Under the pieces are notes generated by a model, which did not search any database, was not told where the DNA came from, and saw nothing but the letters and a program-made list of their open reading frames with translations. Below are positions 2,961 to 45,112 of a stretch of 64,000 bases of DNA, piece by piece. The stretch's first letter is position 1, and each line of letters begins with the position of its first letter. Origin of the DNA: Zootoca vivipara. Lineage: Eukaryota. The DNA is taken from the NCBI RefSeq assembly GCF_963506605.1, contig NC_083281.1:22940001-23004000 (forward strand), read 5' to 3'. The position numbers were made by a program, and so were the translations under genes.

Positions 2961-5184
2961 CGCAGATGTGTAGCACTTTATTAGTTAAAATAACCTTTCA
3001 AGCCACGTTGGGTGGTTGTTGTTGTGTTTATTAGCATGTTATATATTTTCACGTTTTTGGTTCATAAAGCACCATGTGATCCTTGAATGAAGTGTTTTAT
3101 AGAAATATAATAAATGATATGATGGTGATGATGATTACAAAAAACCTGGTAACCTGGTCCATGAAACTAGTAGTAGCCTCTTAGAATGTCCACATATACT
3201 TTTGCTAGCACAACGGTGGTCTTAAAAAGGCAACAACTGTACACTTGTGCATGTATTTTTCCTTGGAAGACAACACTTTCTGTTTGGTAATCATTTTGTA
3301 AGATATTCCATAATGTTTGCAAAGAAACAGCAACAACAAGAGTCCATCTGACTTCTAGTTTACAGGTGCCTCTTTGCTTGGTTGACCTGAAACAGTATGT
3401 TGAAAAAAGCTGCTTCGCTAACTGCTGTTTACATTTCCTGGAAGCAGAAGCTATGAGGAGCATCTCCTTTAAAAAGAAGTGCATCACACATGGGCATAAC
3501 CTGAGTTGTGTATGAGGAAGGGAGCCAAGAGGGATTGAGTCTTTTGCTCACAACTTGGTTTCATTCTTACAGGTAGCAATGGCTGATTCTTCTGCAGTTG
3601 GTACGCCACTGTTGACTGAGCAACTTCTTACAAAGGACTGCAATGGGCTTGATGTTTCAAAAGCCCAGGAGCATCTAACAGTCTGTAAGCCAGAGCCTAT
3701 CTGTGTAGAGGTGAGCTCCACAGTGCTGCCCCCTGTCTGCCCAGGCACAAATGACAGAGAAAAAGGACTCCCTAGCAATAGTGCAATCTGTGAGTACTAT
3801 GGTTTTGTTCTTGCTTTTAGAATTTAAACGATTCTCCAGCTGGTGAAAGAGAGTTTCTAGCACCCTGTTATAAACAACTATTAAAAAGTTGCATTAGAAA
3901 TTATAATCTTCTTCCTTTCAGTATGTTTCTCTGCCAGCATTCTGAAATATGAACAAGGATATGACTGCATGACATCATGAGACACAGGTTTTCTGCATGG
4001 CACCATTTGCAGTGCAGAGCGCCAGCTCTAGGTCCATGCATGCAACCCAATGTATTGCCCAGGTTCTGCAGTTTCCTAGCTTTCATTAAAAAAATGAGGG
4101 GAAAGCTTCTAGCTCTCATAATTATAGAGGAAAATCTTTAAAACTATTTAATACTTACTTTCAGGTAAGTAACCACCGCCTTTAGGTGAGGAATGCCTGT
4201 CCACTTCTATTGCCTATGTCACTTTCATCCTGATAGTTTGCATGTGAGGCCCTTCTCCTAATCAACTCTTCATTCTCCCTTTATCCCTGCTGGGGAACAG
4301 CCAAAGTGTTCCACAGCGATTACTTGACTGGAGAAACACAACAGTGTGTAAAGACAGCTGCTGCTTGGTATCTCCCCTCTCCCCACTTCTGCTATCACTC
4401 TTCAACAGTTGCTGAAGGAGGAGTGTAGCTTATGCAACCACCTCAATAGCTTGTTTACAATGCTGACTTAAGCCTACATAGCTTGCGTAGTCCGAAGGTT
4501 GTGAGAATGAATAGTGTCCTGCTGATGAAAAACTGATTGCCAGGAAGGCAGACTTTTCATGGCATTCTATCCACCTGTTTCTCCTTCTCTTCAGGGAGGT
4601 TCTGCAAAGTAAACTGCAGGTTCTGCCAGGCCCTGCTTGATTCCCTGTGTTTCTCTTCATCTCCAGACAGCCTGGGTGCCAATCAGTGTTTTCACTGCCT
4701 GATCACCTTCCCAGATGAGAAGTTCAAGGAGCGGCACATGAAGCGGGAGCACCCGGAGGACTTTGTTCAGGCCAATCTGCGTGATGCTCTTTTTGTCTGC
4801 TTCATATGTAACAAGGCCTTTGAGAGTTCTCGTGCACTCATCTGCCACCAGCGGGGCCATGCGCCAGCCCCGCCTTCTGACTCTACTGACTGCTTGCGCC
4901 CTACCTTTGACTGCCATGACTGTGGCCGCCGCTTCAGCCAGTTGGCCAACTACCAGCGTCACCGCCTGGGCCATGCTGCGGGCCACAGCTTGCCTCACCA
5001 GTGTCCGGACTGTGGCAAGAGCTTCCGACAGCTTTCAAACTTGCGTCGGCACCAGGCTTTCCACCAGCAGACCCAGGAGTTGCTGCCCTCCCTCCCCTAT
5101 TCCTGCATGGAGTGTGGGGAGAGCTTTAACCAGGAGGCTGGGCTGCATGAACACTACATCCGCCATGCCCGTGGGGAGCTCTAA
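2571..5184 (+). CDS. ZNF576: Zinc finger protein 576 (C2H2), 3 coding exons, ~247 aa
   Basis: Exons 2571-2579, 3573-3789 and 4667-5184 join with GT-AG sites in phases 0 and 1 (744 nt). The last exon encodes CLITFPDEKFKERHMKREHPEDF...CMECGESFNQEAGLHEHYIRHARGEL, closely matching recalled human ZNF576 (CLITFADSKFQERHMKREHPADF...HYIRHARGEL). An alternative start at ATG 3579 is possible. Confidence 0.92.
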
Positions 5185-11204: not shown

Positions 11205-14200
11205 CTATTTCTCTGTGTAGGCCAGCAGCAGCACCGCCTCTGCATTCTCAGACAGTTCCACCACAGCTCGCTTCAACATCTGGTAGGTGGACTCAAAGGA
11301 GATTTCGGGCTCTATCTTGACACCCCGCCCCAAATAGGGCACATAGCTCCATGCCCAGCTGGTCAGGGAGGCCGGCTTGGTGATGAGGCTGAGCACATAC
11401 GCAGAGTCCAGTGGTTTAGCAAAGGGGCTCCGGATCACCCCCTGAAGCAGGCGGGGGCTTGTGCTGGTAGCCTGGGCAGTGTGCTCTAAGGAGGCCTCAT
11501 CCAGGCCAAACTCTATGCAGAAGCTGGCAATGGTGGCGGTGAGGTTGTCGACCACAGCCGGCTGAGGATGCTCCACACAGAAGAGGCAGCTCTGAAGGGC
11601 CTTTCCCCACACATCTTTCATCAACACCTTGGCCTTCCGCCTAACCACTCGGGATAGGACGGTCGGCAGGGCTTTCCTCAGAGCTTTTGTCTTCAAATCC
11701 GGAGCGGAGCTGCTGAGGGCTCCCAGGAGGAGCGGCAAGTCGAAGGTGTCTGGCTTGAGGCAGGAGACCAGGAAGACCTGTGGGGAGTCCACGCCATCCT
11801 TCTTCAGAGCTTCCTCGCAGCTCTTCTGCACCTGACCCTGCACTTCCTCTTTGGCGACGGGTTGGCTCCCAGGCCGGGTCTCCACATCCACATCTATCTT
11901 GCTCCTCACAAAGAAGAACTGCTTCCCTGCTGAGGTGATGGCTCTGGCCAGGCAGCTGTGGGTGTGCTTATAGCGCTCGGAGGCCACCAGCAGGAAGAAG
12001 TCGTAGCGGCTGAGATCCAGGTGGCTCACACCTTCCTCTGTCAGCCCCACTCCTGGCAAGTCCCAAAGGTAAAGGTTGGGGACAACTGGGAGTAGGTAGG
12101 GCATGGCTTTCCTCGTCATCTCAGTCACCCCAGTGGGGGCCGCATCCGGTTCCCCACAGCCCACCCCTCTCAGAGCATTAACCAGCGAGGACTTCCCTGA
12201 GCCAACTTCTCCTATCACGGCGACATCCAGTCGTATTTGTGTGGGGTCCGTCAACACGGATGAGATCACAGTTGGGACTTCTGACAAGCTGCCGCCCTGG
12301 CAGATTGCGTACAGCTCCTTAATCTTCTTCTGACTCACCTTGTTCAAATCCTCCAGGTTCCCATCGTGAGTTCTAGAGAGAAGTGAGAACAGAATAATAA
12401 ATATCCACAGTCCGGGGCTGCGTTTCCTCAGGAGTTGCACGCTGGCAGTTGGCAAGGCCGAACTGGGGTCGGAGGGGATAGCCAACCCATTGGTATTTCT
12501 GCAGCAGGGTCCCAGCACACTCCCTGCCTCCAGCTTCCTAGGGCCACCCAATGAGAAGGAAAGGCGAGCTTTTTAGCTACGGTATGTTCCAAAGTGAAGC
12601 GCTTAGGAACACTGAAAAGGTAAGGTGCTCCCATTTCAAGAGAATGGGCTGCAAGTTCTGTTATGCACAATGGGACTTCGAGGAAAACACAACTCCAAAA
12701 GAAGATATTGGAGGACTCCAATTCATTGCCCGTGTAAATAGCAGATCTAGCTAAAAGGTAACACACGGAGATCTGCATTGATTGTTTCAGTGCATCCCTA
12801 ATTATGATTATTATTGTAAAATAATTATAAGATGGTTGGCATGGTCTTAGAAGAAAGCATGGCTGTGAGGGGCCATCTTCAAATATCTAATGGACTGTCA
12901 CATAGAAGAAGATGGAGCAAGCTTGTTTTCTCCTGCTCTGGAGGGCAGGGCTCAAACCAATGGATTCAAGTTCCACGAAAGGAGATTCCAACTAAACATG
13001 GGGGGAAACTCTGATAGTAAGAGCTGTTTGGCAGTGGAAAAGACTCTCTCGGGAGGTGGTAGACTCCTTTCATTGGGGGTAAACAATGCAATATTTGCAA
13101 AGCACAATCTAGTGCAGGTGTGGGGAACTTTCGGTACTCCAGAGTTTGCTGAACTACAGCTCCCATCATCCCTAGCAATCGGCCTTTCCTCCTAGGGATT
13201 ATGGGAGTCGAAGTTCCCCAGATTTGTCACTGACGTATATTATGAGATACCACCAAAACGAAATTTGAGAAGCTTTTCCCCGTCTCCAGAGTTCACAGAA
13301 CTGTATGAAAGGGAACCCTGTTTTCAAGAATTTATCCTATTCTATTCCACCTATTGCTTTTTCACATTCCTGCCTTAGCTAATCCCAGCTGCCACATTCT
13401 GATGTTCCACTGGTCCTATTCTAGAAAGAAAGCTCATGACCCAAAAGCTTTAGCAGCAAGGTCCCCCCCCCCCGCTGTATTTTTTTTTTTGTGCTACTGA
13501 AAAAAGTTAGGGCTCCACCAAGCCTGCTAGTATCTTCGTTTGCAGGCGGCACATAGCCCTAACAACTTGCAGCTTGAACAAACACTTTTGCATGTCTACA
13601 TTCTGAGCAGCTGAATGATCCCTCCTACGGTGCAGCCACACCAGAATTATCTGCCTTTAGAAGAGCCTGGATGAAAGGACAGGACAGCAACTCATTTAGG
13701 GATGCAACAGGCAACCTCCTTTGCAGAAGGACTCTGGACTTACAGGAGCCTTTCATTACCTAATTTCCTTTTTATTTTCCAGGGCTTGTTAGGACCATTC
13801 TTATGGGACACAGCCTCCTCTTTTCAACAGTGGGGGAAAGAACACAGAAGCCAGATACAAACAACACAAACTACCTGTACTTTTTGGAAACAAATGGAGA
13901 AATTTTTGTTTCAACTAGCTTTTCTAGCTAGACGGCAAGGTTTCTGCCTTTTAAAACCAGGGTGGATTTGATTTAAATCAAATCGATTTAAATCACAATT
14001 TAAATCACTAGTCAGTAAGACTTGATTCAAATCATTTTTTTTACAGAAAGACTCATTCTTGCTGGTATAATCTTAATATTTACAACCAGATGAAGGTTTC
14101 ATTTTTGGAATAATAAATTTTCAGAGTTGTTTTTACAGTTATATAAAAAATTACTGATTTGGTTATACTATTAGAAATACATAGACAGATAATTATGAAA

Positions 14201-15700
14201 TTATGGTGAGGTTCAATAAGTTAACTGTTTATATTTGGAAAATTTTCTGCTGTGCTTTATTGGAAGGAGAAAAAAATCATTTCCTTGATAACAATTTATT
14301 TAACTAAAACAATAACATTATAACATATGTATCCATGTTTGTTAAATGATGTGGTTAAACAATTTATTTTTTTTAAATGATGTGGTTTTTTTCAAAAAAT
14401 AGTTTAACCACATCATTTAACAAACATGGATACATATGTTTTAGCACACATGAAAAACTTAAAACTTTATTTCCTGATGGACTACAGTGGTACCTCTGGT
14501 TAAGAAATTAATTCGTTCCGGAGGTCCGTTGTTAACCTGAAACTGTTCTTAACCTGAAGCACCACTTTAGCTAATGGGGCCTCCTGGTGCCACCGCGCTG
14601 CCAGAGCACAATCTCTGTTCTCATCCTGAAGCAAAGTTCTTAACCCAAGGTACTATTTCTGGGTTAGCGGAGTTTGTAACCTTAAGCGTTTGTAACCCGA
14701 GGTACCACTGTATAATGTAACCTAAATAGAAAACTATCTTTAGTAAGATTTTTCCTCCGAAAGTATTTTATTTTAAAAATCTGAATTTTAATAAAAAAAT
14801 CCAAGTTAAATAATTTTTTAATTTTTTTAAAAAAAAACCATTGATTTTTATCTACCGTTTAAAACCCATACTTGGTTGTTCTTGCACTCTTTTTTATTTT
14901 AGCTGTTTTCAAGGATCTCTCTGTAAATTGCTTTGGGGCCTACGTAGATACTGGAGGCAACTCACAAATAAGTAAATCAAGAGAGGCACCCTCTTCCCGA
15001 CTCACCTCTTCAAATTGAGCACCTCTCCTTCCAGGCTGTCTTCAAAGCGTGCAAACTCATATCTGTCCGTCTCCAGCCCTGACACCAGGAATACCTTCTT
15101 GGGGTCCACCCCATGCTTGGTCAAAACACCAGCTAGTTCCTTCCGGATCAGCCCCAGCTGCTCAGCCGGATTGTACCTGGATCTGAGCCGCCGCTCAGCT
15201 GTGTGCAGGTCCAAGTCCACCTTGGTGCGTGCCAGGATGAGGCCTTTCCCCTTCTGCTTGATGGCCTTGAGGACTTGGAGGTGGCTGTCCCTCAAGCCTC
15301 CATCCCCGACCACCACCACAAAGCAGCTGAATTTGCTCAGGTCGCCCAAGCGTTTGAGGTAGGCGGACGGCTTCTCCGACGCCTCGAAGCCCGGCAGGTC
15401 GTGCAGGGTGAGGTCTGGGTAGACAGGGTGAGCGTGGGCAACCGGTTGCTTCGTGGTCTCAGGGGCCTCTCGGAGATATGCCCATGGATCCGTCACCCGG
15501 CGGGGCTTGTCCAGGAGAGCCCCGACCAGGGTGCTCACCCCTGAGCCACGCTCTCCCAGGATCCCGACCTGGATCTTGAGGGTGTTCACACAGTCCACCA
15601 GCGCCTGGATTTGGGAAGCGGCACTGCTGGCGTTTTGGGCCTCATACTGGGCCTTCAGGATCTTCAGGTACGATTCGTCCAGGACGGAGGAACCGGCCAT
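11205..15700 (-). CDS. Immunity-related GTPase (IRG/p47) paralog with tandem GTPase domains, 2 coding exons, ~620 aa
   Basis: Exons 15700-15006 and 12372-11205 join across a phase-2 intron (AG|GTGAG...CTCTAG|A, Arg codon; 1863 nt). Domain 1 motifs: GERGSGVS, DLPG, TKVD. Domain 2 motifs: GEVGSGKS, TGVTEMT, WDLPG, YDFF, SKID, followed by the IRG helical C-terminus. An acceptor at 15709-15710 implies an upstream 5' UTR exon. Confidence 0.9.
12840..13075 (+). mobile_element. CR1 LINE 3' fragment
   Basis: Encodes DCHIEEDGASLFSPALEGRAQTNGFKFHERRFQLN, resembling a CR1 ORF2 C-terminus. Confidence 0.7.
13958..14858. mobile_element. AT-rich non-autonomous DNA transposon carrying a nested MITE
   Basis: Starts CAGGGTGGATTTGATTTAAATC and ends GATTTTTATCTACCG (degenerate inverted termini), with repeated GATTTAAATC motifs. 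Family not identified. Confidence 0.5.
14485..14710. mobile_element. Tc1/mariner(pogo)-type MITE
   Basis: TIRs CAGTGGTACCTC...GAGGTACCACTG flanked by TA on both sides. Confidence 0.85.
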
Positions 15701-16179
15701 GGCTGGAGCTGCAGAGAGGACGGAGGAAGGAAAAAAGAGAATACTATCTGCAGTTCTCAGCGTGCTCTTTAGGGATGCATGAGCAGATGCTTATCTCTGC
15801 CTGCCTCCCTCCTTCCCTTTCTCTCACACACATGTATTGACCATCCATACAGTGAGTTGAGGAAGTAGGGGGTCACCCATTTGATATCTGTCTCAGAGCC
15901 ACTTCCTTTGTTACCTTAATGGCCCATGCTTCGAGGGCCATTACCTCACCAGGAAGCTAGCCTGGGCTATACCAGGAAATGAGTGCCGTGCTGGATCCAG
16001 GAATTAGAAGGGTGCTCAGGCACATATCCTACCCTACGCCCCCAAAGGAAAAAAATCAACACAGTATGCTTATGTCTGTAGTATGGTTGGATTCCTCTTT
16101 GTAGAGTGCTCTCCCCAGGGAGGCTCGCCTGGAGCCTTCGTTCCATATCTTTAGGTGCCAAGCAAATAACGTTCCTGTA

Positions 16180-16545
16180 CAAGGTAAAGGACCCCTGGAT
16201 GGTTAAGTCCAGTCAAAGGCAACAATGGGGTTGCGGCACTCATCTCGCTTTCAGGCCGAAGGAGCCCGCGTTTGTCCACAGACAGCTTTCCGGGTCATGT
16301 GGTGAACATGACTAAACCGCTTCTGGCGCAACAGGACACTGTGATGGAAACCAGAGCACACAGAAACGCCATTTACCTTCCCGCCACAGCAATACCTATT
16401 TATCTATGTGCACTGGCGTGCTTTCAAACTGCTAGGTTGGCAAGAGGTGGGAAAGAGCAACAAGAGCTCACCCCGTTGCTGACCTTCTATTTGGTAAGCC
16501 CAAGAGACTCACTGGTTTAGACCACAGCGATGCCCACGTCCCTGT
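16180..16545 (-). mobile_element. Sauria SINE
   Basis: Characteristic GGTAAAGGACCCCTG...TTTCAAACTGCTAGGTTGGCA...GAGCTCACCCC...TTAGACCACAGCG; the reverse complement matches the copy at 32.8 kb. Confidence 0.8.
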
Positions 16546-18649
16546 ACAACCAGGCCTTTGGCTAATTAAACACTCTATGGTCTTTAAAACTGTGAGGGGT
16601 ATCTATTGTTTTTGCTTGTTGCTATGTTATGTATTTTTTGGTGTTTTTTATATTGTAAGCTGCCTTGTAGTCCTCGGATGAAGGAGAGGAAGAAAGGCAA
16701 ATTTATAAAAGTGAAAATAACAACAACAACAGAGAGTTGCTAGGCACTGTCTGCAGTTAAAAGCTCTGCCTGCAGGATTACTATCTAATAGCAACCAGAG
16801 TCAAAAGGGAGGGAACTGGATAGTAAGGGATCACCAGTCCCCAAACGACAGGGAAAAGGTGCCTAGAAAAAGAACCCAGTAAGGCAGCCTGTATAAAGAA
16901 AGACGACTTTGGCTCCAGCATCAGACCACTAAAAATATGTCCCAGCCAGGAGTCCTGTTTCCAAAGCAAAGCCACCTCTGCCCACTTTAAACAAACAAAG
17001 CCAGCCCATGACCCCAACAGAGAAAAATCAAATATTTGGTTTCTTTTTTTCCTGTCAAAAACTAAGGGCTGCATCCAACCTCTACTCAGAGCAGTTCGGA
17101 TGAAATCAATGGGCCTCAGTTAGCTACGTCCTATTAATTTCAATGGGTCTACTTCTGAGCAAAGCAGCATTGGCTAGAACTCTAAATTTTGTTAAAGGAA
17201 CACTCTTAGCCGTTGGGGAAAACCTAGAGTTTATTAGAGAAGAACTAAGAACTACTCTCCTGGATCAGACCATGAAAGGCCTACCTAGTCCAGAAGCCTG
17301 TTCCCACATTGGCCAACCAGACACCAAAGGGAAGCCTGGAAGGGTGAACTGAGCACAATAAGCACAAGAACGGGCCTTCTCAGTCGTGGCTCCCCAGTTA
17401 TGGAACGCTCCCCCCATCATTACCTATATTTAGGCACAAGGCCACAAACCTTTCTCTTCTGCCAGGCTTTTAATTATCCACGGTCTCCATCAGTGGGTGG
17501 GATGCCTTTTAAATAAATAATAAATATGTACGTGTTTTCAGCTTTTACTAAAGTTTGTGCAGTTGGCTTTAAAAAGGGGGTTAGACAAATTAATGGAGGA
17601 GAAAACTCTCAGCGGTCATGATGGTTATATGCAACTTTCAGGATCAGCAGCAGAATATCAGTTCTATGAGGACAGTTATTGTTATTATTATAATTATTAT
17701 TGGTTGATTTAGTTATCGAACTTATCACTTAAAAAGCAACAAATGAAAAGCAACTCAAAAAGCAACTTGTATATTGAACCTAATCAACCACTAAAAGCCT
17801 TATTTCTTAACTGGTGCAAACAGAATGTTATGTCACTTGGCACCTGCAAGAGTGCCAGTTCTGCAGATCAAAGCATTTATGGGATGAGGTTGATCCTGCA
17901 GGTAAACTGGCCCCAAGCTGTTAAGGGGCTTTTTATGCTAATAGTAACATGTCAAAACCAACCACTAGCAAACTGATCACCAGTGCAGATCTCAGAGAAC
18001 ATTCTGAGTTGGTGGCCACATCACGGCACCACGCTTGGAGCTGCTGGTTCATAGCTCGTACTGCCTACGCTGACTGGCAGCAGCTATCCAGAGGACATTC
18101 CCAGGCCTACCTGAATATGTTGCCAGGCATTGAACCTGGTAACTTCTGCCTGCAAAGCAGATGCTCTTACCTCTGAGCTACAAGCCCTTCCCCTTGACAG
18201 CAAATCCCTTAAGAACAAGTGTGTTTTGCTGGAGGCAGATCTGGGGAACTGCTGGACTTTCCCAAATATGGGGGTCAGCCAATGGCTTCTTTGTCACAGA
18301 ATTGTGGTTGTAAACCAAGACCTTCAGAGAAACGTTTAATAATCAAAACAAGCCTGCCGGCTTCCATCTTGATAGGTGGAGGCCTTTCTGAGCACAACAC
18401 ACCGTCAATAATTGCCCTTGTTCGTTAAACTGCCCTTTTCCGTTTGTTTTTGAACATCAAGCCTGATGCGGAACAACGCCGAAGAGCTCAAAAGCTTGCT
18501 CACTATTTTGTGATCTTTTGCGGGATTGGTCCTAATACAGGTACAAATAAAGTAAAATCCAAGTGAGGATTTTGGACCCTGGACAAACGCGGCTAACTAT
18601 GATTTTTATATTTTAATTTATTTTAAAATAAATGTGTCTCTTTTGCGTG

Positions 18650-19400
18650 TCCCGGATCCCCACCCCCGACTCCGGTTCTTGTCTTACAGGTTAGGGAGAA
18701 TGCCAGCCACAAAAGGAACCCAGGAGTCCTGGATGACTGCCAGCCAGCCAACCCCACCCGGCCGCCCCCCAAAATGAAAAGGTTTCGGGAAGGGAGGTGT
18801 CCCAGGGGCAAAACCTACCCGTCCGTCGCCCGCCTGTCTGGGTCTTCTGTGCGCGGCGAGGCTTGGATACTGCTGCGCCCCTGCGCCCTGGCCCCAGATG
18901 ACGCGCAAAGCAAAATCTGGGAAACAGAAACCTCTTGGACGGGGGCGGAGACGGCGGCTCCTCCTCTTCCTCCCGGCTGGCTGTGCTTGGCAGGCGGAAA
19001 GGCTCCTCTGACGTCTCTGGGATGCGAAGGGAAAACAGATCAGAGCGCATCGGCAGGCGGGTGGGATGAGGAAGCAGCCAAAGGGGGACAACGCCAGGAA
19101 GCCGAGCGAGCGGTCCCGGGGCGCTGCCTTGTAAGCGGGTAAGCAAGCCCAGCCCGGCGGGTGTCTCCCCATCTTCTTCAGCCTCCATAAAACGAATTCG
19201 TTCTGCCTGCCTGAAGATCTTCCCGGCCTGATGGAAAAGGCAAAAATACTCTCCGGCCTCTTTCCGCATTAGTGCGCCGCTGTGTCTGCCAGATCGCTTA
19301 ATCAACCTGTTTTCTTGCCTAAGAATCAGCGGCCCTCTTATGCCATAGGCTCAACCCTTACGCCAAAACGTAGGAGAAGGGTCGCGGGCGATGACCGACT
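18650..19400. promoter_or_regulatory. Bidirectional CpG-island promoter of the two IRG genes, with an ISRE
   Basis: CpG island between the divergent genes. Candidate first-exon donors on both strands: minus GG|GTAGGT at 18818, plus GTAAGC at 19131 or 19139. ISRE-like GGAAACAGAAACC at 18920-18932; CRE-like TGACGTC at ~19009. Confidence 0.7.
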
Positions 19401-19883
19401 TCAGGGGCTGGTGGCTTCAAGGCTGGATTAATGCAATGCTTTTTTTGTGAGGCTTCTCTTGCAAATTGATCTGGAAGCTGCAGGATGAGGCCATGTTAGC
19501 ATATAGCACTCCTGCTCGGAGATCTGCACCAGCTGCCCGTTTGGGGTGAAAACCTCCCCGCCAGCATATAACACCTTGCTTGCGGGGGTTGTACCGTACT
19601 GCTTGCCGATCTGCTACCCAGGTTCAATATTATACCAGGTTATACCATTCAGGACCAGGTTACCTGGGAGATACACCATGGCTGCGGTCCTCAGCTTGAG
19701 GCCAGACTCATTCCATTTTGGTGGTTTGTGTGTGTGTGTGGACTTAACATATATACAGCCAAGCTCATTGCGTTTAATCACAGCCTCTAAGTAATGTTGT
19801 TGTTTCTCTCTCTCTTTCCACCTCTCCCCTTTCCTTATGTTTCCGCAGCATCTCTTGAGAAGCCCTGTTTCCCTGCATCCAAC

Positions 19884-22800
19884 ATGGCTCTAAAGACCCC
19901 CCAGGGCTCTGTGCTGAGCTCCCCAGAGCAAGGGGATGTCTCCGTGGTCCTTGTGGGAAAATCAGGGGTGGGAAAATCGGCTCTCCTCAATGCCCTGCGT
20001 GGGATGACCGAAAACGATGTCGGATGTGCTCCGTTGGATGCCCCACCTAAATCCGGGGGCCCTGTCATGTACCCCGACCCATCCCATCCCAATTTACTGA
20101 TCTGGGAACTAGCTCTGGATTGTGAGGGGCAGGCCGACCGGTGGCTGAAGGAGGCTGACGTTTTTGTCGTGGCGACAGATGGCAAGTTTGACGAGACTCA
20201 TGCCCACCTGGCCAGGGAGGCCCGGGCGGCTGGCAAGAAGGTCTATTTTGCCCGCACCAAGGCTGATTTGGATCTTCATACCCTCAAGCGGTTGATGGGG
20301 GAGCACTACAACCGGCCCGAGGCCCTGCAGGCCCTGCGGGGTGTCTGTGCTGAGTCGCTGGGGGCCCACGGTCTCGGGGAGCCCTTTGTCTTCCTGATCT
20401 CTGCTTTTGAACCCTTCGCCCTGGACTGCCCCCAGCTGCGAAAAGTGTTGCTGGACGACGTCCACACGTACGAGAGGTAAGTCAGGCAACCAGCTCAAGC
20501 GAGCCGTAGGAACATAGAATCATATCAATGAATGAACATGACTAAGATTCATAATGACGATAATAATATTGTGGAACTAGAAAAGGGTTGCCGGAAGTGA
20601 TCAAGGGGATGAAGCCGCTCCCCTATGAGGCTCAGGGCTTTTCAGTTTAGAAAAAAGGTGATTAAAGGGAGAGGACACTATAGAGGTGTGTAAAATTACG
20701 TGTGACACAGAGAAAGTGGATAGTCATAATCAGGCATCCCCAAACTGCGGCCCTCCAGATGTTTTGGCCTACAACTCCCATGATCCCTAGCTAACAGGAC
20801 CAGTGGTCAGGGATGGTGGGAATTGTAGTCCAAAACATCTGGAGGGCCGAAGTTTGGGGATGCCTGGTCATAATACAGTCGTATCTTGGTTGTCAAACGC
20901 CTTGGTACTTGGACGTTTTGGCTCCCGAACGCCGCAAACCCGGAAGTCAGTGTTCCAGTTTGTGAGCGTATTTTGGAAGCCAAATGTCTGTTTCTGCTGT
21001 CAGAATTGTTTCTGGGGCCAATCAGCCAATCGGAAGCCACGCCTTGGTTTGCGAACGTTTTGGGAAGCCAATAGGGGTCTCCCAACAACTCTCATTGTAA
21101 CTGGCTGGCCACTGTGAGAATCGGATGCAGGATTGGACAAACCTTTGATCTGATCCACCAGGGCTCTTACGTTCTTAAGTTTAATGGAAGAAAACCTACA
21201 GGGACTTCATGAACAGAGTTCTGAGACCAGGTGCCTGTGGGCATGGGCACGTCGCTCATAAGGACAAGGGCCTTTGGCTGATGTTCTTGTGGAGCGACAA
21301 GGAATGTAAATTACAAGCGCAGGCCGATATTTATATCCTGGTGGCCTTTGCTCGAGTGTCATCAGGACTTTTGCTCAGAGCAAAGCAACCAGAGAAGTGG
21401 CCTTGTTGGTCTCTGTTTGTGCCTCCCCTGTGGAGAAAACAGTGTTTGTTTACAAGCAACAACCCCCACCTCCAAGATGCTCCTGCTACCCCGAGTTGCA
21501 ATCAAATGAAGCTGTGTCAATCCAGTGTAGTGCAGTGTTAACTTTCTCGGAATTCCAAACGGGTCCACTGGTCCAAAAAGGGTGGCAACCTTTTAATAAG
21601 TCGACCACATATGAAAAAACGTTCCCTCTACCTCTTTGGACTTGTAAAAGGGTAAAAAGGGTGTTGGGAAATGATCACATAATGAATTGAATTTTGTTTT
21701 TCAAATGTCCCCCCCGCCCCAAACAACAACAACAACAACAACAACCAGAGTGCTTCCTGTTGGGGATAATTTAGACTGAAATTCCCAGGTGTCAAAAAAG
21801 GATACCATATTTATGGATGCAACAACTGTGGCCCATGTTTTGTTAGCTCCCATATGGAAATCGAGTGAGGTCCCAGCCAAAGAAGAATGGCATCTTAAGT
21901 TGACAGAATATGCACAACTTGGAGACTTAATATATAAAATAAGAGAACAAGAAGAACATACGTTTAGAGAAGATTGGAAAATGTTTATTGAATATATGGG
22001 AAATAATTGTGTACAGCTGAAAATGCTGGCAGCATTAAGATACATTCAACAGTGCAAATAAGTTTTGATGGATGCAATAATGGAATACTGAATGGTATAG
22101 TTTTTTGTAAAATATGCAGGGATTTATGATATGTAAAATGAACCAGGGAAGAAGGGAAGTTATTGATATCTTTAGGATGCAAAAATGAGTACTGTATTTT
22201 TCGCTCCATAGGACGCACCTGACCATATGACGCACCTAGTTTTTAGAGGAGGAAAACAAGATTTTTCTTTCTTTCTTGAATTGTCCTAGGCATAGCAGCC
22301 AACTCCTAGAGGCCTACGTGCCTTTGCCCCCCCCATTAAATATTTGAGGAAGCTTCTTTTGCAAAGGGGGAAAGCTCCATTTTTGAGGATCAGCTCAAAG
22401 TTGTGCAGCTTTTTTTGCAAATGGGAAAAGCCCCTTTTTTGTGGGGGGGTGGTGTGTCAGCTCAGAGTTGTCCATCTTTTTTGCAAAGGGGGAAAGCTCC
22501 ATTTTTTAGGATCAGCTCAAAGTTGCTGAGTTTCCTTGCAAAGGGAAAAAAATTCCTGTTTTTATGGGGTTCAACTCACAGTTCTGCAGCTTCTTCTATA
22601 GGAAAGGAAAGAGGCCCATTTCTACAGTTTCCAGACAGATAATCTAACCAGTCAGTTACATGTCTCCCTCTGCAGACAATAATTGAGGCCTAGGCAAGGG
22701 GCCGGGAAGGGAGCTAGCTCTCTTATCTCCCTTCCCGATCTCTTGCAATCAGCTGCTGAGCGGGTTCCTTTCTGCTCATTCCCTCTTGTTAGCCTTTAGC

Positions 22801-24444
22801 TCTTTCTTAAAAAAAAACCAAAACAACAACCATGATCTGCCTTTAGCCCCTGGGCAATTCAGCTCCAGGGACCATGCATTCGCTCCATAAGACGCACAGA
22901 ACCTCCTCTTACTTTTTAGGAGGAAAAAAGTGTGTCTTATGGAATGAAAAATACGGTAATTTAAATTGTAAAATGAAAAATTTAATAAAAATTGTATAGA
23001 AATAACAAAAAGTGTGGCCACCTTTGAATGAGCTTAGTTGCTGTGGAATGCCTGCTGACCAATGGGGTGGGAAATGGGAACTGGAATGGAGGGCTCCACA
23101 ATACAACATTAATTTCATATGATATTAATTCTAGCCATTGGATACCAATGATGTTAATATAATAGGAGATCAACTATAGTTACACTATTAATCCCAGTTC
23201 TTGCTCCCTCTCCCTTGCTGTGTCCTGTTTGCCCCCACAGGGTCCTAAAGCCCACTCGCTTGGACTACGAGGTGATCAGCGAGCAGGAGATTGCAGAGAT
23301 CCAGGAGGCCTATGAGCTGGGAGGCCTCTCGGAAGTGGTGACCCGCATTCAGTGCAGCCTGGAGACCCTCTGGAATGCCCATCTTGACATTGGCATCACG
23401 GGGGAGTCGGGCGCTGGGAAATCCACCTTTGTCAACGCCTTGAGGGGTGTGGGCGATGAGGATGAGGGAGCTGCGGAGACGGGCGTGACAGAGACCACAG
23501 CCCAGCCTACGCCATATCCTTACCCCGCCCACCCCAATGTCATCCTGTGGGATCTCCCTGGCATTGGCACACCCAACTTCCAGGCTGAACGCTACCTAGA
23601 AGCGGTGGAGTTTTCTCGCTACGACTTCTTCATCATCCTGGCCTCGGAGAGGTTTAAGGAGAACCACGTCCGTTTGGCCAAGGCCATTGTCAAAGAAGGC
23701 AAGCGGTTCTATTTCGTGCGCACCAAGCTGGACAATGACCTGGAGTCCATGAGGAGGCGGAGGAACCCTCCAGCCGACGAGGAAGTCCTGGAGCAGATCC
23801 GGACTGACTGCCGGGAGAAGCTCGCCAAGGCCGGGCTGGCAGACACCAAGGTTTTCTTGCTCAGCAGCTTCGAGATGGACAAGTTTGACTTCCAAGTCTT
23901 CGAGGAAACCCTGGAGCAAGAACTTCCGAGCCACAAGCGCCACGCCTTCCTGCTGTCGCTGCCCAACGTCTCCTCGGTCATCATAGACAAGAAGAGGCAG
24001 CTCCTTCACCAGGAGGTTTGGAAGGTAGCTCTTATCTCCAGCTTGGTGGCCGCCGTCCCTTTGCCGGGCCTGGCCTTCACCTGCGATGTCTCCATTTTGC
24101 TGAGGAAGCTGTCCACCTACCGGCAGGACTTTGGCCTCGATGCAGCGTCCTTGACCCGTCTGGCCGAGCGGTCGGGGAAACCACTGGAGGTCCTGAGGGC
24201 CGAAGTCCACAGCACTCTAGGCCGGAGCATCAACAGGGAAGTGGTCATTGGGTTGCTGGGGAAGGCCACTGGGACAGGCTTGGTGGTGGCCAATTTCTTC
24301 ATCCACCGGATTCCGATTTACGGAGCCCTGGCATCCGGCGGGATTTCCTTCCACACCACTTACTACATGTTGAGCCAGTGCTTGGAAGAGCTGGCTAATG
24401 ACTCCCAAAGGGTCCTCATGAAGGCCTTTGAAAGCGAGGTCTGA
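19884..24444 (+). CDS. IRGQ: Immunity-related GTPase Q orthologue (tandem GTPase domains; second domain IRGC/IIGP-like and intact), 2 coding exons, ~598 aa
   Basis: Exons 19884-20476 and 23241-24444 join across a phase-2 intron (AG|GTAAGT...CACAG|G; 1797 nt). N-terminal QGDVSVVLVGKSGVGKSAL matches recalled human IRGQ QGDVTALFLGPPGLGKSAL. RLDYEVISEQEIAEIQEAYELGGL matches QDGFEVLGAAELEAVREAFETGGL, and VPLPGLAFTCDV matches APLPGLGWACDV. The gene lies near ZNF576. IRG family membership is certain; the symbol is by inference. Confidence 0.85.
20731..20866. mobile_element. hAT MITE with 8-bp TSD
   Basis: TIRs CAGGCATCCCC...GGGGATGCCTG; perfect TSD GTCATAAT. Confidence 0.9.
21750..23010 (+). mobile_element. 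Decayed L1-clade LINE 3' end, interrupted by a DNA transposon
   Basis: Encodes VAHVLLAPIWKSSEVPAKEEWHLKLTEYAQL..., like an L1 ORF2 C-terminus. The 3' UTR resumes after 22958 and matches the copy at 28.7-29.0 kb. Confidence 0.75.
22192..22956. mobile_element. Tigger/pogo-like non-autonomous element nested in L1
   Basis: Imperfect TIRs CTGTATTTTTCGCTCCATAGGACGCAC / GTGTGTCTTATGGAATGAAAAATACGG with TA on both sides; internal ~60-bp tandem units. Confidence 0.8.
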
Positions 24445-33900: not shown

Positions 33901-36900
33901 TTCTTTCAATGGGAAAGTTCGCTTCAGGTTAAGTACAGACTTCCGGAACCAATTGTGTTTCTAAACCGAGGTACCACTGTAACAAACAAACAAACAAACA
34001 AACAAACAAACAAACAAACAAACAAAAATAAATAAGCCTATTCAACTAATTAGTCCTGCTAGTGGACGTCCATGCGAGGACTTCTGCTAGCAGAGTGGGG
34101 CTTCCCTCTCCTCTCCCCTCGTGTGCCCCCTGAAATTGGCTTGGAGCTTGGGGGGTGGGGGAGAGACCCTCAGAATAATATGCAGGGGCAGGAGAGGGAA
34201 TAATGTTCTGTCAGGGGGAGCTGGAATAATAATATAATAATAATTTATAATAATGATATAATATAATGATTTATACCCCACCCATCTGGCTGAGTCTCCC
34301 CAGCCACTCTGGGCGGCTCCCAATCGAACATTAAAACAATACAGCATTAAATATTAAAAGCTTCCCTAAACAGGGCTGCCTTCAGATATCTTTTAAAATT
34401 AGGATAGCTGCTTATTTCCTTGACATTTGATGGAAGGGTGTCCACAGGGTGGGTGCTGCTACCGAGAAGGCCCTCTGTCTGGTTCCCTGTAACCTCGCAA
34501 TGAGGGAACCGCCAGAAGGCGCTCGGAATACTTGTGTTGATGGAAAATTTCCTTAATGAATTCCTAATAATAAAAAGTTGTTGTTGTTGTTATTTTGTTC
34601 TACTTTTTGCACAAGTGTCTCAAAGCAACACACCAATCAGCGTAAAGCAACCTATACAGTAAATGGAAAACAAAACAATTGAAAGCCGAAACCTAATGTG
34701 TTGTATCCGATGCCAGTCCTACTCTGAGTAGACACGCTGAAATTAATGGAGAACTTGCAACCCAACCTCTCCATCCCCCTAACATGCTGTAGGTCTGGCC
34801 ACCACAGAACAGCTCCCCAAGGAAAAAGAAACCGATCACCAACTGCTGCAAAGAAAAAGGTTAACCCTGAAAAGTTATCAGTGTTGGTGCCCGGCAAGCC
34901 TTCATGGGGTTAGCATTCCTTTTTTAAAATTTTTTTAAAAATAGACTTTATTAGAAAGTTTTAAAAAGGTATACACACACTAGAAAATTTAAAGTAACTT
35001 AATAACATAAGATAACTTAGCAACTTAAATAGCATAGCATAACAAAGGTAACATAAATAACCTAACTGCATATTTAAGCCACCCAACATAAATTAATCAA
35101 CATAAATAAACAAATCAAGGTTGATCTAAATAGATTAACTCAATCAAACTACAAATAATAAACAAGATCAACTTAGATAAGCATAACATAACGTAACATA
35201 ACATGACATAACATAACATAACATAACAACATAACGTAATATAACATAACAAAAAAAGAAAAAGAAAATTATCCCCAGATCAGATCTTAACACATGGGCC
35301 TATCTCCATGAAATCCATTCATTTTAGATTAAAATTGGCTTCCAATCGCCAATATATCGCTTCCCTTACTATTGTTTTCCTCTTTAGTTTGCTTTCCCTC
35401 TTATTAAATCCAACTGAATTATTCCTACATGTTTTCTCTATTCCAGACAAATCACTAGCTCTGTTTTGATATTTTCTTTTTAAAAATACTCTTCCACGTA
35501 TCTCCATTCTGTTTTTATTCTCTGTTTTGATATGTTCCTAATTACCGCCGTCATTCTTGCTAGGTTCATGAACTCTACTACTTTAATTTGCCACTCTTGG
35601 ATTGTTGGTATTTCTGTTCCTTTCCATTTCTGAGCTAATACTAATCTCACCGCGGCACACGCATATAAGAAAATATTAATTCTATCTCTAGGTATATTTT
35701 CTGGGATTAGGCTTAGTAGAAAATATTCAGGTTTCTTTTCAAACGTAATTTTTATCATTCTCTTCATTTTTTCATATATATCATTCCAAAATTTATATAT
35801 TTTTTTACATTCCCACCAACAGTGAAAATACGTACCAGTTTTTTCCTGGCACTTCCAGCATTCTTTTGTTTCTGTCTTGTAGATTTTAGCTAGTTTTTCT
35901 GGCGTCAGGTGCCATCTATATACAAGCTTCATCATGTTTTCTTTGATTCCTGAACACGCTGTAAATCTCATTGTCGATCTCCACAATTTATCCCACTGCG
36001 TTTTATAAATTGGTCTTCCTACATCCTGAGCCCATTTTGTCATCACAGATTTTATCTCCTCGTCTTTTAATTCCCATTCTAACAAAAATTTATACATCTT
36101 AGACAATGATTTAGCCGTATTATCAATCAAAATTTCTTGTAATTTAGATTTCCCCTCATTAAATCCTATTTCTTTATGTTTTTTAAATAAACTTTGTATT
36201 TGTAGGTAATGTAGCCAGCTCATGGGGTTAGCATTCCATAGACTACAGAAAAGGCCTATTCTCTCATCATCACACATCATCTGCCAGAGGGAACACACAG
36301 AGAAGGGCCTCCAATTAGGGGATGTGACAGAGCCGGCCCACCCATGAGGCAGGGTGAAGAGTCCGCCTCAGGTGGCAGAAGTGCAAGAGGCGGCATTCTG
36401 CCCTCCCCACCTCTTCTGCTGCCAAGAGGGAGGTGTTACAGCGCACAGTGTTGCTGCTTATCTTCCCCAGGTGGAATGCTCTGAGGAGCACCCTGGCTCC
36501 TGCTGAGTTTGGTGACAGCCAGGGTGTTCCTGCACGCCATGTTGCTGATCAGCTGACCCCTCCGGGGGGGGGGGGAGGAGCCAAATGGCAATGCTCTGAG
36601 GAGTGCTCTGGCTTTTGCCAAGTTTGCTGAGAGCTGGGAAGAGGCGGCAGAAGTGGTGGGCATATGGGTGAGAGGGGGCGGTAGGCGGCAATTCCCATTT
36701 TGCCTCAGGTGGTGAAATGGACTGGAATCTGATGATCTGTGTCTCTCTCCCTGCTACTCACTGTTGCTTCCAACAGTTCACGGAAATGGATCAAAGAATG
36801 GAGTGCAGTGTCAAACCTGCATCGGGAGCGCAGCTGAATGTGGCCGCAATGCGCCCACAGGGCCATGCTATGGGAGTGAAGACCACTGTGTGCAGATCTC

Positions 36901-39900
36901 CCAGCGCTTCCTGCCAGGTATTGCCAAGTGGGTACCAAAGCATTCAAAGCACAGAGGCACGGGGATAGGAGAGACTAAGGCATCGCTAAGGGTGTGATGG
37001 TCACTAGCCAATAGGTGCAGGGGAACCTGTGCAACCGCAACCTGCAGAGTAATCACCGTTGCAATGGATGCACATGGTGTTGGTGGTGGGAAAACGTATT
37101 TCAAGGTTTTCTGAGTTGCTCTCCTATGTTTTTAAGACTGTGTATGTTTTGCAATAAAATACAATTGCAGAGCTGGTCTTTCTAGGCTAGACAGGCAAAG
37201 CACTCCAAAAACCTTTAGAGGCAACAGTTCCTTTAATTAAATGCTATCTGTTTTTTTGTTCTGACCATGTTACTTCTTCCTGCTGGATTCGTGATAAATT
37301 GCCTCTTGTTTGAGGGCTTCTGTTTCCTGCTTGGTGGGTCAGTAGGTTAATTACTAATTTCCTTGCATATTTTAATACTCCTTTTATAGTGAAAGAGAGC
37401 TATTTAGCCATAAAGGAAAGGAAAGGAAAAAACACGAAGGAAATAATTTGCTACTCTCCTCCGCTACAGTGGGGAACGGAAACTGACTAATATGGGGCAA
37501 TTAAGGGGCAATGCACCACTAACCCATATCCATGCAATAAAATGAGTGGAGCCAGCTAACTGGAAACTTCAAATTACAAGAGACCTTTGCTGAAAGGGGC
37601 TTACTTTTGAGTAGACATAGATGGATCTTGGCCATTGGCATCGCTGGATAATATAGAACTATATTAAGTTCTGTGTGAAATCTGTTTTAATTGCGCTTCC
37701 AGCTAATTGCAAAAAAAGGAACAGTGCCTCAATGCTAAAGGGCAGTGGATACTGTGGAAGCTATTCCACAGAACAGCAAAATAACACCCGCCATGCAAAT
37801 TTAAACATACACAGTGTATGGAGAAGCTGTAATATGTATTTAGTGAGATAATTTGTTGTTGTTTAGTCGTTTAGTCGTGTCCGACTCTTCGTGACCCCAT
37901 GGACCATAGCACGCCAGGCACTCCTGTCTTGCACTCCCTCCCGCAGTTTGGTCAAACTCATGTTCGTAGCTTCGAGAACACTGTCCAACCATCTTGTCCT
38001 CTGTCGTCCCCTTCTCCTAGTGCCCTCAATCTTTCCCAACATCAGGGTCTTTTCCAAGGATTCTTCTCTTCTCATGAGGTGGCCAAAGTATTGGAGCCTC
38101 AGCTTCACAATCTGTCCTTCCAGGGAGCACTCAGGGCTGATTTCCTTAAGAATGGATAGGTTTGATCTTCTTGCAGTCCATGGGACTCTCAAGAGTCCCA
38201 TGGACTGCAAGTTGGAGTTTAAAAGTTGGAGTTAAAAGTGGAGTAGTGTCCATTGGAAAACAATCTACAGTACTAGCTGCATTTCTTAGATCCAAAAATG
38301 GTCCTGTTGTGCATGGACATCACCTGATGATTGCTTCTCCAGGTGAAGAAACAGAACCCATCATAAAGGGGTGTGGAGGCAGTTCTTTTAAGGACACATT
38401 GGTGGCGTACCAGATCGGGAGAGATTTTGCCTTTGTTGAGCAAAAGGTCTGCAGCAGTTCCAACTGCAACAACAGGAGCTTCCCAGGTAAATGACAATTG
38501 CCGTGCTCTGATAACCTTCTGTCAGGTAGGTATAGGATCCTGCCTGTATGCCAAATAATAACAATCTAGGACACAGTCTGCAGGGAAGTTCCCCAGCACA
38601 AGCCCCATGGGAATGAACAGGAGAGCTGCAGGAGAGTCGTCGCGCCTCTTCCAAATTCATATTTTGAAAAATAGGAAATTCACGGAATGTTTAATTTCGG
38701 TAAAAATTGGATTTCACTGTTGTACTCATTTTTCAGAAGATAGAGGTCCTGTCTTGCGCCCAAGATTGAGGGGGTCCAGCGCATGGCACAAATGGGTGCA
38801 CATTGCATGCACTATTCTGTAAGGGATGCTTTAGCTGAGATTCCTGCATTGGCAGGGGGTTGGACTAGGTGACCCGTGGGCTCCTTTCCAACTCTATGAT
38901 TCTATGACTTCATGTGTATGATGTTGCATCATTGGAGGGGGGAGTCTGAGTGCGGAGCCCGGCGCAGAGGAGAGGGCCAGCAGAACTCCACTGGTGCAGC
39001 ATTGCGTAAAACTCAGCATTTCTGTAAGTCGCCTTGAGGCATTTTGGAGAAAAGTGACTTAAGAAATTGAATAGATCATCATCACTAAAGTCTCTCCCCC
39101 CCTTTTCTTTACTCTACAGTCATCACTTCCGGACAGCCCAATGGGCTGCAATGCTACACCTGCCAGGAGTCTGGGCATGGGGAGTGCACTCAGGACAGAC
39201 TGCAAGTTTTAAATTGCACAGGAGTCATGGATCAGTGTGTACATGTCTTCGACAGAGGTAAGGAAGCGGCAAGGGTGCGTATACAGAGGTGGCTGAGGAC
39301 TGGGATGCATGCCTGTTAGCCCGATCAGATGCTAAAGAGGGCACAGCTCCTTATCTCAAAGAGTTACAGAGAAGCATGGATCAGAAAAACTGCTGCTACA
39401 GGAATCCATCCTTTGGGACACACTGCTTGAGGGCCATGTGAAATTACCTTAAACAAGGAGGTTATTTGTTACATCTTTGTTCTGGCTTTGATCCCTCCCA
39501 ACCAGCATCTACAGTGACAGTGGTACCTCGGTTTTTTATTGTCTCGGAAGCTGAATGCCGAGTTTTGAATGCCAAAAACCCAGAAGTAAATGCTTCCGTT
39601 TTTGAACGCGCCTTGGAAGTCGAATGGCTTCCGCTGAGTTTTTTTCTCCATTGAATTTGCAGGCTGCCCTTTGCGCCTCGGTTTTCGAACACTTCAGAAG
39701 TCGAACGATCTTCCGGAACGGATTATGTTTGAAAACCGAGGGACCACTGTGCCAGGAGCAATTAATTCTGCAGCACCTCTCCGTCAGGTAGGAAATAACT
39801 CCTGACAGAGAGGATGCAGCCAAGTGACCTGTTCTCAGGGAAGGTGCCCCATTGCTTCTCTGTGTGAGTCGCTGTTCTTGGTGTTCCCTCTTTTAGGCAC

Positions 39901-43241: not shown

Positions 43242-43508
43242 GTTGTTGTTGTTTAGTCGTTTAGCCATGTCCGACTCTTCGTGACCCCATGAACCAGAGC
43301 ATACCAGGCACTCCTGTCTTGCACTGCCTCCCGCAGTTTGGTCAGACTCATGTTGGTAGCTTCGAGAACACTGTCCAACCATCTCGTCCTCTGTCGTCCC
43401 CTTCTCCTAGTGCCCTCAATCTTTCCCAACATCAGGGTCTTTTCCAGGGAGTCTTCTCTTCTCATGAGGTGGCCAAAGTATTGGAGCTTCAGCTTCACGA
43501 TCTGTCCT
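43242..43508 (-). mobile_element. BovB (RTE) LINE 3' fragment
   Basis: Encodes GQIVKLKLQYFGHLMRREDSLEKTLMLGKIEG...; nearly identical to the 37.9-kb copy. Confidence 0.92.
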
Positions 43509-44167: not shown

Positions 44168-44171
44168 CACA

Positions 44172-44229
<58 letters not shown>
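44168..44229. repeat. Compound (CA)n(GA)n microsatellite
   Basis: Seen directly. Confidence 0.9.
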
Positions 44230-44234
<5 letters not shown>

Positions 44235-44967: not shown

Positions 44968-45112
44968 AGTTATAGAACTGCAGCGTTGGAAGGGACCATG
45001 AAGATCATCTCGTCCAACTGCCTGCAATGCAGGAATTTTTTTGCCCAACATGGGGCTTGAACCCACAACGCTGAGATTAAGAGTCTCATGCTCTACTGGC
45101 TGAGCTATTCCA
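44968..45112 (-). mobile_element. tRNA(Lys)-derived SINE with CR1-type tail
   Basis: Minus strand: GGAATAGCTCAGCCAGTAGAGCATGAGACTCTTAATCTCAG...GGTTCAAGCCCC...GGTCCCTTCCAAC. Confidence 0.75.

Follow-up and report, generated by a model that had tools for sequence, protein, structure and literature searches.

Head-to-head IRGQ-type genes at a CpG island of the lizard Zootoca vivipara: a candidate IRGQ orthologue and its ancient paralogue

Introduction

Within the IRG family, IRGQ (FKSG27) has so far counted as a mammalian 'quasi-GTPase' whose origin is unclear, and IRGC ('cinema') is a conserved single-exon IRG that is linked to IRGQ in mammals. Here we describe a locus of the lizard Zootoca vivipara, at positions 11205-24444 of a 64,000-nt stretch of its genome (RefSeq assembly GCF_963506605.1, contig NC_083281.1, positions 22,940,001 to 23,004,000, forward strand; the whole stretch is called the window below), at which two genes of the IRGQ layout stand head-to-head.

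Mammalian IRGQ is an autophagy receptor with roles in autophagy and proteostasis and in the quality control of class I major histocompatibility complex molecules (MHC-I) (PMC13172515). The human protein begins with a G domain (residues 1-189, PDB 8Q6Q), at the end of which lies a first LC3-interacting region (LIR1, amino acids 186-189), and continues with a C-terminal IRG-like part, where a second such motif (LIR2, amino acids 421-424) sits in a disordered loop (PMC13172515). In zebrafish, irgg-irgq1 yields one spliced product in which the N module is canonical and the C module a quasi-GTPase, both of them truncated, and Bekpen et al. (2005) considered the IRGQ genes of different vertebrate groups probably not monophyletic (PMC1297648). 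Our literature searches on IRGQ evolution and on reptile IRGQ found nothing relevant.

A preliminary description, made from the sequence of the window, had taken the lizard genes for a candidate cell-autonomous immunity module built from tandem IRGs of the mouse Irgb2-b1 type. We propose instead, with a probability of roughly 0.78, that two IRGQ-type paralogues are divergently transcribed from one CpG-island promoter, the plus-strand gene being IRGQ and the minus-strand gene a duplicate that arose before the amniote-amphibian split.

Results

Two divergent two-domain genes

The region contains four long open reading frames (ORFs), two per strand, all of which match the Pfam family PF05049 (IIGP) in a profile search, with E values between 8e-24 and 2e-104 and well clear of the 24-bit cut-off. 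The outer two, 11205-12551 on the minus strand (E 5e-69) and 23215-24444 on the plus strand (E 2e-104, full-length profile), each hold a complete IRG unit. The inner two, 15002-15700 on the minus strand (E 8e-24, profile positions 9-222 of 375) and 19794-20480 on the plus strand (E 2e-29, positions 27-221 of 375), hold the G-domain part only, so that the N exons of the two genes stop at practically the same point of the profile, 221 in the plus gene and 222 in the minus gene. There is no third IRG-like gene in the window, and IRGC is not among its genes.

The four ORFs are two divergent, head-to-head genes of two domains each. In the plus gene a donor, AG/gtaagt, at 20476 is followed by an acceptor with a long pyrimidine tract, ...cccccacag/G, at 23241; in the minus gene the donor AG/gtgagt at 15006 is joined to the acceptor ttctctctag/A at 12372. 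Both coding introns are in phase 2 and rebuild an Arg codon, AGG in the plus gene and AGA in the minus gene, and every aligned orthologue of either gene has this junction Arg (R198 in alignment A1, R232 in A2). According to the ORF list neither outer ORF has an ATG ahead of its G domain, and therefore neither could be translated on its own. The preliminary description had read the locus in this way, with a phase 2 intron inside an Arg codon at the same position of both genes, and had warned that the ORF list breaks two genes into four ORFs; all four ORFs are where it placed them, and the splice sites, together with the RNA junctions described below, bear out its gene structures.

The plus gene (group A) comprises a 5' untranslated region (UTR) exon of at least 19017..19138, known from a contig of run X1 and reads of run X19; an exon 2 at 19849..20476, with its ATG at 19884 and 197 codons plus 2 nt that encode an N pseudo-G domain; and a last coding exon at 23241..24444 (400 aa and the stop) with the full IRG unit. 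The ATG that opens the inner plus-strand ORF, at 19794, lies within intron 1, the true start being the one at 19884. In the minus gene (group B) a 5'UTR exon of at least 18819..18888 is spliced over a 3110-nt intron with GT..AG ends to exon 2 at 15006..15708, where an ATG at 15700 opens an N pseudo-G domain of 231 codons plus 2 nt, and the last coding exon, again a full IRG unit, occupies 11205..12372 (388 aa and the stop). The 3'UTR would extend to about 26090 in the plus gene and to about 10000 in the minus gene, estimates drawn from the size of the transcript contigs (for the minus gene, an X1 contig of 3064 nt). The products are 598 aa, the length of the orthologues, and 620 aa. Plus and minus genes are 31% identical in their N exons and 36% in their C exons, in keeping with the strong divergence noted earlier for the pair.

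RNA evidence for splicing and expression

We compared transcripts over positions 14750-20700, using contigs of two runs from two studies (X1 and X2) and stranded raw RNA-seq reads of two more (X19 and X20), all labelled as the same species. Sequences that break off at 15006 continue at the start of the minus last exon, 12372, in contigs of X1 and X2 and in 8 raw reads of X19, and those that break off at 20477 continue at the start of the plus last exon in contigs of both runs and in 19 raw reads of X20. Both junctions that the preliminary description had singled out for checking, 15006/12372 and 20476/23241, are thus spanned by contigs and by raw reads. Upstream, one X2 contig (record 8) joins 15708 to 18819 over an intron that reads GT..AG on the minus strand, and the joint 19137 to 19848 (GT..AG with the cut shifted by +1) appears in an X1 contig (record 7) and in 5 raw reads of X19. 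In the stranded pairs of X19 and X20 the minus exon is covered only with the first mate on the plus strand and the plus exon only by pairs of the opposite kind; transcription therefore runs on the predicted strands. All four runs cover the exon sets of both genes, the raw ones at low depth, and the two genes are thus co-expressed.

Relative to the window, the reads and contigs of X1, X2, X19 and X20 mostly show 95-99% identity and numerous fixed exonic differences, and the RNA samples may come from another population or subspecies than the assembly. Among the closest relatives, some database models are extended at the N-terminus, by 11 aa in P0121 (Podarcis raffonei, isoform X1, 631 aa) and by 127 aa in P0183 (Podarcis muralis, 725 aa). 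These extensions have no transcript support at this locus, where the minus 5'UTR exon has no ATG and the upstream ATG of the plus gene is intronic.

A shared CpG island

The only clear CpG island of the region, at 18501..19500 (GC 0.54-0.62, observed/expected CpG 0.73-0.76, compared with 0.37 for the window), contains one 5'UTR exon of each gene, as expected from the earlier remark that the genes flank one island. The known 5' ends, 18888 for the minus gene and 19017 for the plus gene, are 128 bp apart within it, so that the first exons lie on opposite strands less than 1 kb from each other in a CpG island, the arrangement of a bidirectional pair. This spacing indicates, from contig ends and not from mapped transcription start sites, that one bidirectional promoter serves both genes.

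Between the two 5'UTR exons, at 18921..18931 on the plus strand, lies a single 11-mer, GAAACAGAAAC, that resembles the core of an interferon-stimulated response element (ISRE) or IRF site. Matches of the GAAACAGAAAC type occur twice in the window, where 0.83 would be expected, and 25 of 100 shuffles reach the same count. The 11-mer would be the sole hint of interferon control, a well-placed one in a window whose count is not above chance.

Relatives and conservation

The gene models were searched exon by exon, and full-length comparisons below refer to orthologues in the databases and not to joined spliced proteins of the window genes. The last exon of the plus gene matches proteins of 598-620 aa, with 79-89% identity in squamates, tuatara and turtles and 62% in a caecilian; a Podarcis muralis protein (P0183) is 97% identical to both plus exons. 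Matches to the last exon of the minus gene are proteins of 611-631 aa; identity is highest in Podarcis raffonei (93%), falls to 67-80% for the other lizards, 57-60% for snakes and 56-59% for turtles, and is lowest, at 44-45%, for caecilians. Across reptiles the C unit of A, its slowest part, is 79-89% identical and that of B 56-78%, so that the latter is roughly twice as divergent. There was no sign of copy-number expansion of either gene, the match lists holding one orthologue per species. Rapid evolution coupled with expansion, as in interferon effectors, is therefore not the pattern found: A is conserved, and B, although faster, is still one-to-one.

Several Logan contigs of 1.9-2.5 kb encode whole proteins of 618-643 aa and must therefore represent spliced mRNAs. 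The architecture is not unannotated, since two-domain models of 598-631 aa already exist in the databases for both genes in many reptiles; nearly all of these relatives are named 'interferon-inducible GTPase 5-like'.

Orthology of the plus gene to IRGQ

Judged by its place in trees of single domains and by its alignment, the plus gene is the orthologue of mammalian IRGQ, one whose C unit has intact GTPase motifs. An Anolis protein named IRGQ by NCBI (P0185, obtained in a region-restricted search) nests in clade A for both of its domains. Used as a query against a representative library, P0185 retrieved IRGQ of koala (P0287) and tenrec (P0317), Crocodylus IRGQ, and 'IRGQ-like' proteins of newt and lungfish. 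We then placed the mammalian proteins in trees of the N domain and of the C unit. In the N-domain tree koala and tenrec IRGQ fall within the amniote A clade (support 96/94), the whole A lineage from lungfish onwards being supported at 100/99, and in the C-unit tree mammalian IRGQ lies within amniote A at 100/100. The alignment with mammalian IRGQ is co-linear from end to end, from an RGDV..G.PG.GKS block at the N-terminus to a PLPGL..CDV block at the C-terminus.

The structure database gave a result in the same direction. The plus N exon matches residues 1-189 of human IRGQ (PDB 8q6q_C) co-linearly (E 4.8e-4; 1.8e-4 with a profile of group A), while the minus N exon has no match to 8q6q_C at E<=1 and a profile of group B none among the 60 matches listed. 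On its own this contrast is weak as a sign of IRGQ orthology. When a 52-aa piece with the P-loop was compared with PDB, IRGQ reached 19.8 bits, slightly above classical IRGs and level with generic P-loop proteins, and a search of a protein atlas with the plus N domain returned generic IIGP/MMR_HSR1 clusters only.

A LIR1-like motif, DYEVI, is encoded at 23263..23277 on the plus strand, just after the exon junction, and aligns with GFEVV and GFEVL of koala and tenrec IRGQ. A motif of this form ([WFY]xx[LIV]) right behind the N G domain is shared by sequences from lungfish to mammals. In the alignments the minus gene lacks LIR1, its sequence at that place being HDGxLEDL. LIR2 (GWEVL or TWEVL) lies in an acidic insertion specific to mammals and is absent from the reptile, frog and window sequences. 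Neither is the plus gene a 'quasi-GTPase', because its C unit keeps the G1, G3 and G4 motifs. Loss of these motifs is derived in mammals, crocodilians, Anolis and Bombina, and hence is not a defining trait of the IRGQ orthologous group.

The minus gene as an old paralogue

The preliminary description had suggested an old inverted duplication kept under selection. In the N-domain and C-unit trees, the minus gene belongs to a separate clade B (100/98 and 100/100) and does not group with mammalian IRGQ. The members of clade B come from caecilians, turtles, crocodilians and lepidosaurs, and include Alligator LOC109283767 (100/98 and 100/100). In a tree of 66 individual G domains from A, B and other IRGs, the N domains form an A clade (100/99) and a B clade (100/97), which are sisters (99/90) and stand apart from all other IRG G domains; it follows that the pseudo-G exon was acquired once. 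A caecilian is present in both N-domain clades, and the duplication that gave rise to A and B therefore predates the split of amniotes and amphibians. The per-domain phylogeny thus upholds the proposed age of the duplication, with the plus gene on the side of mammalian IRGQ, and both genes have indeed been kept, with retention across reptiles and transcripts of the two in the same RNA runs.

The C units of A and B are not sisters in free trees, although their sisterhood is not rejected by the approximately unbiased (AU) test (p 0.126). Since the coding intron has the same position and phase in both genes, and given this test result, an inverted duplication of the whole gene would be the simplest history of the pair. 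Separate origins of the two C exons were considered and set aside, as the AU test leaves sisterhood unrejected and the shared intron position and phase favour duplication of the gene as a whole.

The two genes also lie together in other reptiles. Alligator A (KYO47945) and B (KYO47943/4) are on one contig of 10,383 bp, as judged from a contig record of the same size and from the consecutive accessions, so the genes are adjacent in crocodilians too. In Gekko japonicus the A and B models are on one scaffold of 666 kb, again judged by a shared length. Among the matches of our searches, which were not exhaustive, no member of clade B came from a mammal; the earlier statement that humans have a single IRGQ holds in the sense that, among the matches found, mammals (koala and tenrec) have the IRGQ side only.

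Motif states of the G domains

The canonical IRG motifs G1 (GxxxxGKS), G3 (DxxG) and G4 ([NT]KxD) are present in both C units of the window, as GESGAGKST, WDLPG and RTKLD in the plus gene and GEVGSGKSS, WDLPG and RSKID in the minus gene, and are incomplete in both N domains. The plus N domain retains its P-loop (GKSGVGKS) and RTKAD and has lost DxxG (WELAL), while the minus N domain has lost the P-loop lysine (GERGSGVST) and retains DLPG and RTKVD. The same states recur in the orthologues: every A N domain has GxxxxGK[ST] and none has DxxG (WE[LR]xx instead), and the B N domain keeps DLPG and has lost the P-loop lysine in all amniotes (GxGV[ST]), GK[ST] being kept in caecilians. By these alignments the complementary degeneration of the two N domains is a real and conserved feature.

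The A C unit has nearly unchanged GESGAGK and WDLPG motifs, with a G4 of R[TA]KxD, in lepidosaurs except Anolis and in turtles, caecilian, newt and lungfish. In 17 aligned reptile and caecilian orthologues these motifs are invariant or nearly so, the exceptions being Python (T for A in G1) and turtles (RAKVD in G4). G1 of the C unit has been lost from A in mammals, crocodilians (P0300, P0237, P0328), Anolis (P0186/P0185) and Bombina (P0199), and from B in snakes, agamids, pleurodont iguanians and the alligator. The exon that the preliminary description called an intact IRG exon is therefore intact in Zootoca vivipara, but in the lineages just listed the C-domain G motifs of one or other gene are lost. 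Because G1 has been lost from C units repeatedly while the genes persist, whatever keeps A and B can evidently, as far as motifs can tell, do without nucleotide binding by the C unit.

Loss of the C motifs of IRGQ coincides with an alanine-rich composition in crocodilians and mammals (17-20% Ala), the values for Rhineura, Anolis and Bombina being 8%, 12% and 6%; in the Ala-rich lineages this could hint at GC-biased drift. The newt (P0193/P0334, Lissotriton, 802 aa) and lungfish (P0196, Protopterus, 831 aa) proteins have about 200-240 extra residues before the A-type N domain. A P-loop-like motif lies within this extra part, which may represent a third G domain.

Neighbourhood of the pair

Beyond the 3' end of the minus gene, at 4537-5181 on the plus strand, lies a C2H2 zinc-finger ORF with three fingers (PF00096, E 1.8e-18). 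On the other side, Cys-rich exons of the Ly6/uPAR type lie at 36700-55300 on both strands, with weak, sub-threshold Pfam matches to UPAR_LY6 at about 39-55 kb. Human 19q13.31, which we take to read ZNF576-IRGQ-PINLYP/PLAUR, with zinc-finger genes on one side of IRGQ and Ly6/uPAR genes on the other, presumably has the arrangement that the window resembles, and the C2H2 ORF possibly matches the zinc-finger genes beside human IRGQ. Two models, P0184 of Gekko japonicus and P0185 of Anolis carolinensis ('IRGQ isoform X3'), fuse the A gene to a uPAR/Ly6 domain, either by read-through transcription or by mis-annotation, in agreement with a neighbour of this type.

An element at 16143-16540, in intron 1 of the minus gene, reaches a summed depth of up to about 3700 in the contigs and is found with many different flanking sequences in all four runs. 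An Rfam scan matched it to no family; from its sequence it may be a degraded tRNA-derived lizard short interspersed element in reverse orientation.

Discussion

Both window genes have the layout of IRGQ, with a G-only N domain and an IRG-like C unit on one long exon. The plus gene shares with IRGQ also the LIR1 between the two, an N domain in which the P-loop is kept and DxxG lost, and its place in the same clade for both domains. It differs from mammalian IRGQ in keeping canonical G1, G3 and G4 motifs in the C unit, which mammals have lost, in lacking the acidic, Gly-rich insertion that carries LIR2, and in having a head-to-head paralogue, which was not found among the mammalian matches. Like zebrafish irgg-irgq1, the lizard genes encode two IRG-derived modules per transcript, one of them with a modified nucleotide-binding site, but in the lizard it is the N module that is degenerate and the C module that is a complete IRG unit; irgg and irgq1 are not among the sequences of our trees. 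IRGC resembles the plus C unit in being slow and of the GKS type, and reptile IRGC (about 412 aa) is 55% identical to it, yet it is a single-domain protein with neither an N pseudo-G exon nor LIR1, and forms a separate clade.

The reading of the genes as tandem IRGs of the mouse Irgb2-b1 type is not supported. These proteins, and the tandem 'IIGP5-like' ones of fish, gecko and turtle (580-680 aa), also have two G domains in about 600 aa or more. In the fish, gecko and turtle tandems, however, each N domain is closest to the C domain of its own lineage and vice versa, which marks them as recent and independent, whereas the lizard N domains form one ancient clade apart from their own C units, cover about 220 of the 375 IIGP positions and lack the C-terminal helical domain. 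The architecture is the one already known from IRGQ.

Several readings of the locus compete with two IRGQ-type paralogues on a shared promoter. That the four ORFs of the mechanical list might be four separate single-exon IRG genes or pseudogene fragments, their splice sites arising by chance, has next to no probability, as it is ruled out by the RNA junctions seen in contigs and raw reads of both genes; the lack of an ATG before the G domain in either long exon and the full-length two-domain orthologues of dozens of species point the same way, as do Logan contigs of down to 1944 nt that encode 624-aa group B proteins and have no room for an intron. The preliminary description favoured an interferon-driven immunity module, in which tandems of a pseudo-G and an active G domain would hetero-oligomerise through G-G interfaces on pathogen vacuoles, as sensor and effector. 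Both genes do belong to the IRG family, with intact G motifs in the C domains of this species, an ISRE-like core lies between their first exons, the common promoter and the expression in the same four runs fit co-regulation, the motif losses of the N domains are complementary and conserved, and the minus gene evolves faster. We nevertheless find this module improbable. The plus gene is orthologous to IRGQ, a protein of autophagy and proteostasis and not of vacuole disruption; its C unit is strongly conserved across reptiles, unlike that of arms-race effectors; each gene appears to have one copy per species, without expansion; G motifs have been lost repeatedly elsewhere while the genes persist; and the ISRE-like site is a single one in a window where such matches do not exceed chance. 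Because orthology to IRGQ, conservation, one-to-one orthology and repeated motif loss all differ from what is seen in arms-race IRGs, the reading as an immunity module is not supported.

Somewhat better placed, though still unlikely in our view, is an obligate pair, for example a heterodimer, in which the decay of one partner would relax the constraint on the other. The bidirectional promoter would go back at least to the split of crocodilians and lepidosaurs, given that the genes are adjacent in Alligator, and the N domains have conserved, complementary states (G1 present and G3 absent in A, the G1 lysine absent and G3 present in amniote B). There are also cases of joint decay: the alligator has degenerate C motifs in A as well as in B, B is degenerate in pleurodont iguanians, joined in Anolis by A, and mammals combine a degenerate A with no B found among the matches. 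Against this, regional mutation or GC-biased conversion alone could explain a joint acceleration, the alligator A and B proteins being Ala-rich (15-18%, against 8% in Rhineura); snakes and agamids have lost the P-loop lysine of the B C domain with A intact; and the states are shared by related species, so that the lineage counts are few and non-independent. A complex prediction for the two C units (23242-24441 on the plus strand, 11208-12371 on the minus strand) gave 0.20, 0.32 and 0.17 for a mark of 0.34 and speaks neither for nor against binding, and so returns no verdict on either the module or the obligate pair.

Some observations also weigh against the two-paralogue reading that we prefer. 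Within clade A, the C-unit tree puts mammalian IRGQ next to Anolis sagrei; this is a probable artefact, of long branches or of composition, between two degenerate sequences whose rows are hard to place exactly. Colubroid snakes have FEEP or FEEF where a canonical LIR would be expected. The minus 5'UTR exon comes from one contig of one run (X2), and contig ends are not mapped transcription start sites. The head-to-head orientation is known from the Zootoca vivipara window only, and the absence of B from mammals, birds and frogs means that it was not among the matches of a non-exhaustive search. Finally, binding of ATG8 proteins, GTP binding and a part in MHC-I quality control would in reptiles all be extrapolations from mammals.

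With this in mind, two IRGQ-type paralogues on one promoter would work as follows. The plus gene would have the mammalian role, that of an autophagy receptor or scaffold that binds ATG8 proteins, for which GTP binding by the C unit would be an ancestral but dispensable regulatory feature. The product of the minus gene would be a co-expressed adaptor with a related but distinct function. One may go further, more doubtfully than in proposing an obligate pair, and suppose that the ancestral IRGQ was paired with a second, co-transcribed two-domain GTPase, that the defects of the two N pseudo-G domains were complementary, that both proteins acted jointly, for example as a heterodimeric, GTP-gated autophagy adaptor, and that loss of the partner in the mammalian stem accompanied the change of IRGQ into a nucleotide-free scaffold with a second LIR.

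The value of the locus lies in the comparative context that it provides and not in a new kind of system, as two-domain models were already known, under generic names; for both genes it corrects the label 'interferon-inducible GTPase 5-like' of reptile annotations. The evidence supports a series of one-to-one orthologues of mammalian IRGQ that reaches back to lungfish, alike in exon structure and in LIR1. It likewise supports an ancestral protein whose IRG unit was canonical and bound GTP, independent decay of this unit in several lineages, and the persistence in reptiles and caecilians of a sister gene on the promoter of IRGQ. The lizard locus may thus offer natural versions of IRGQ that are, by their motifs, GTP-competent, together with a candidate partner or antagonist.

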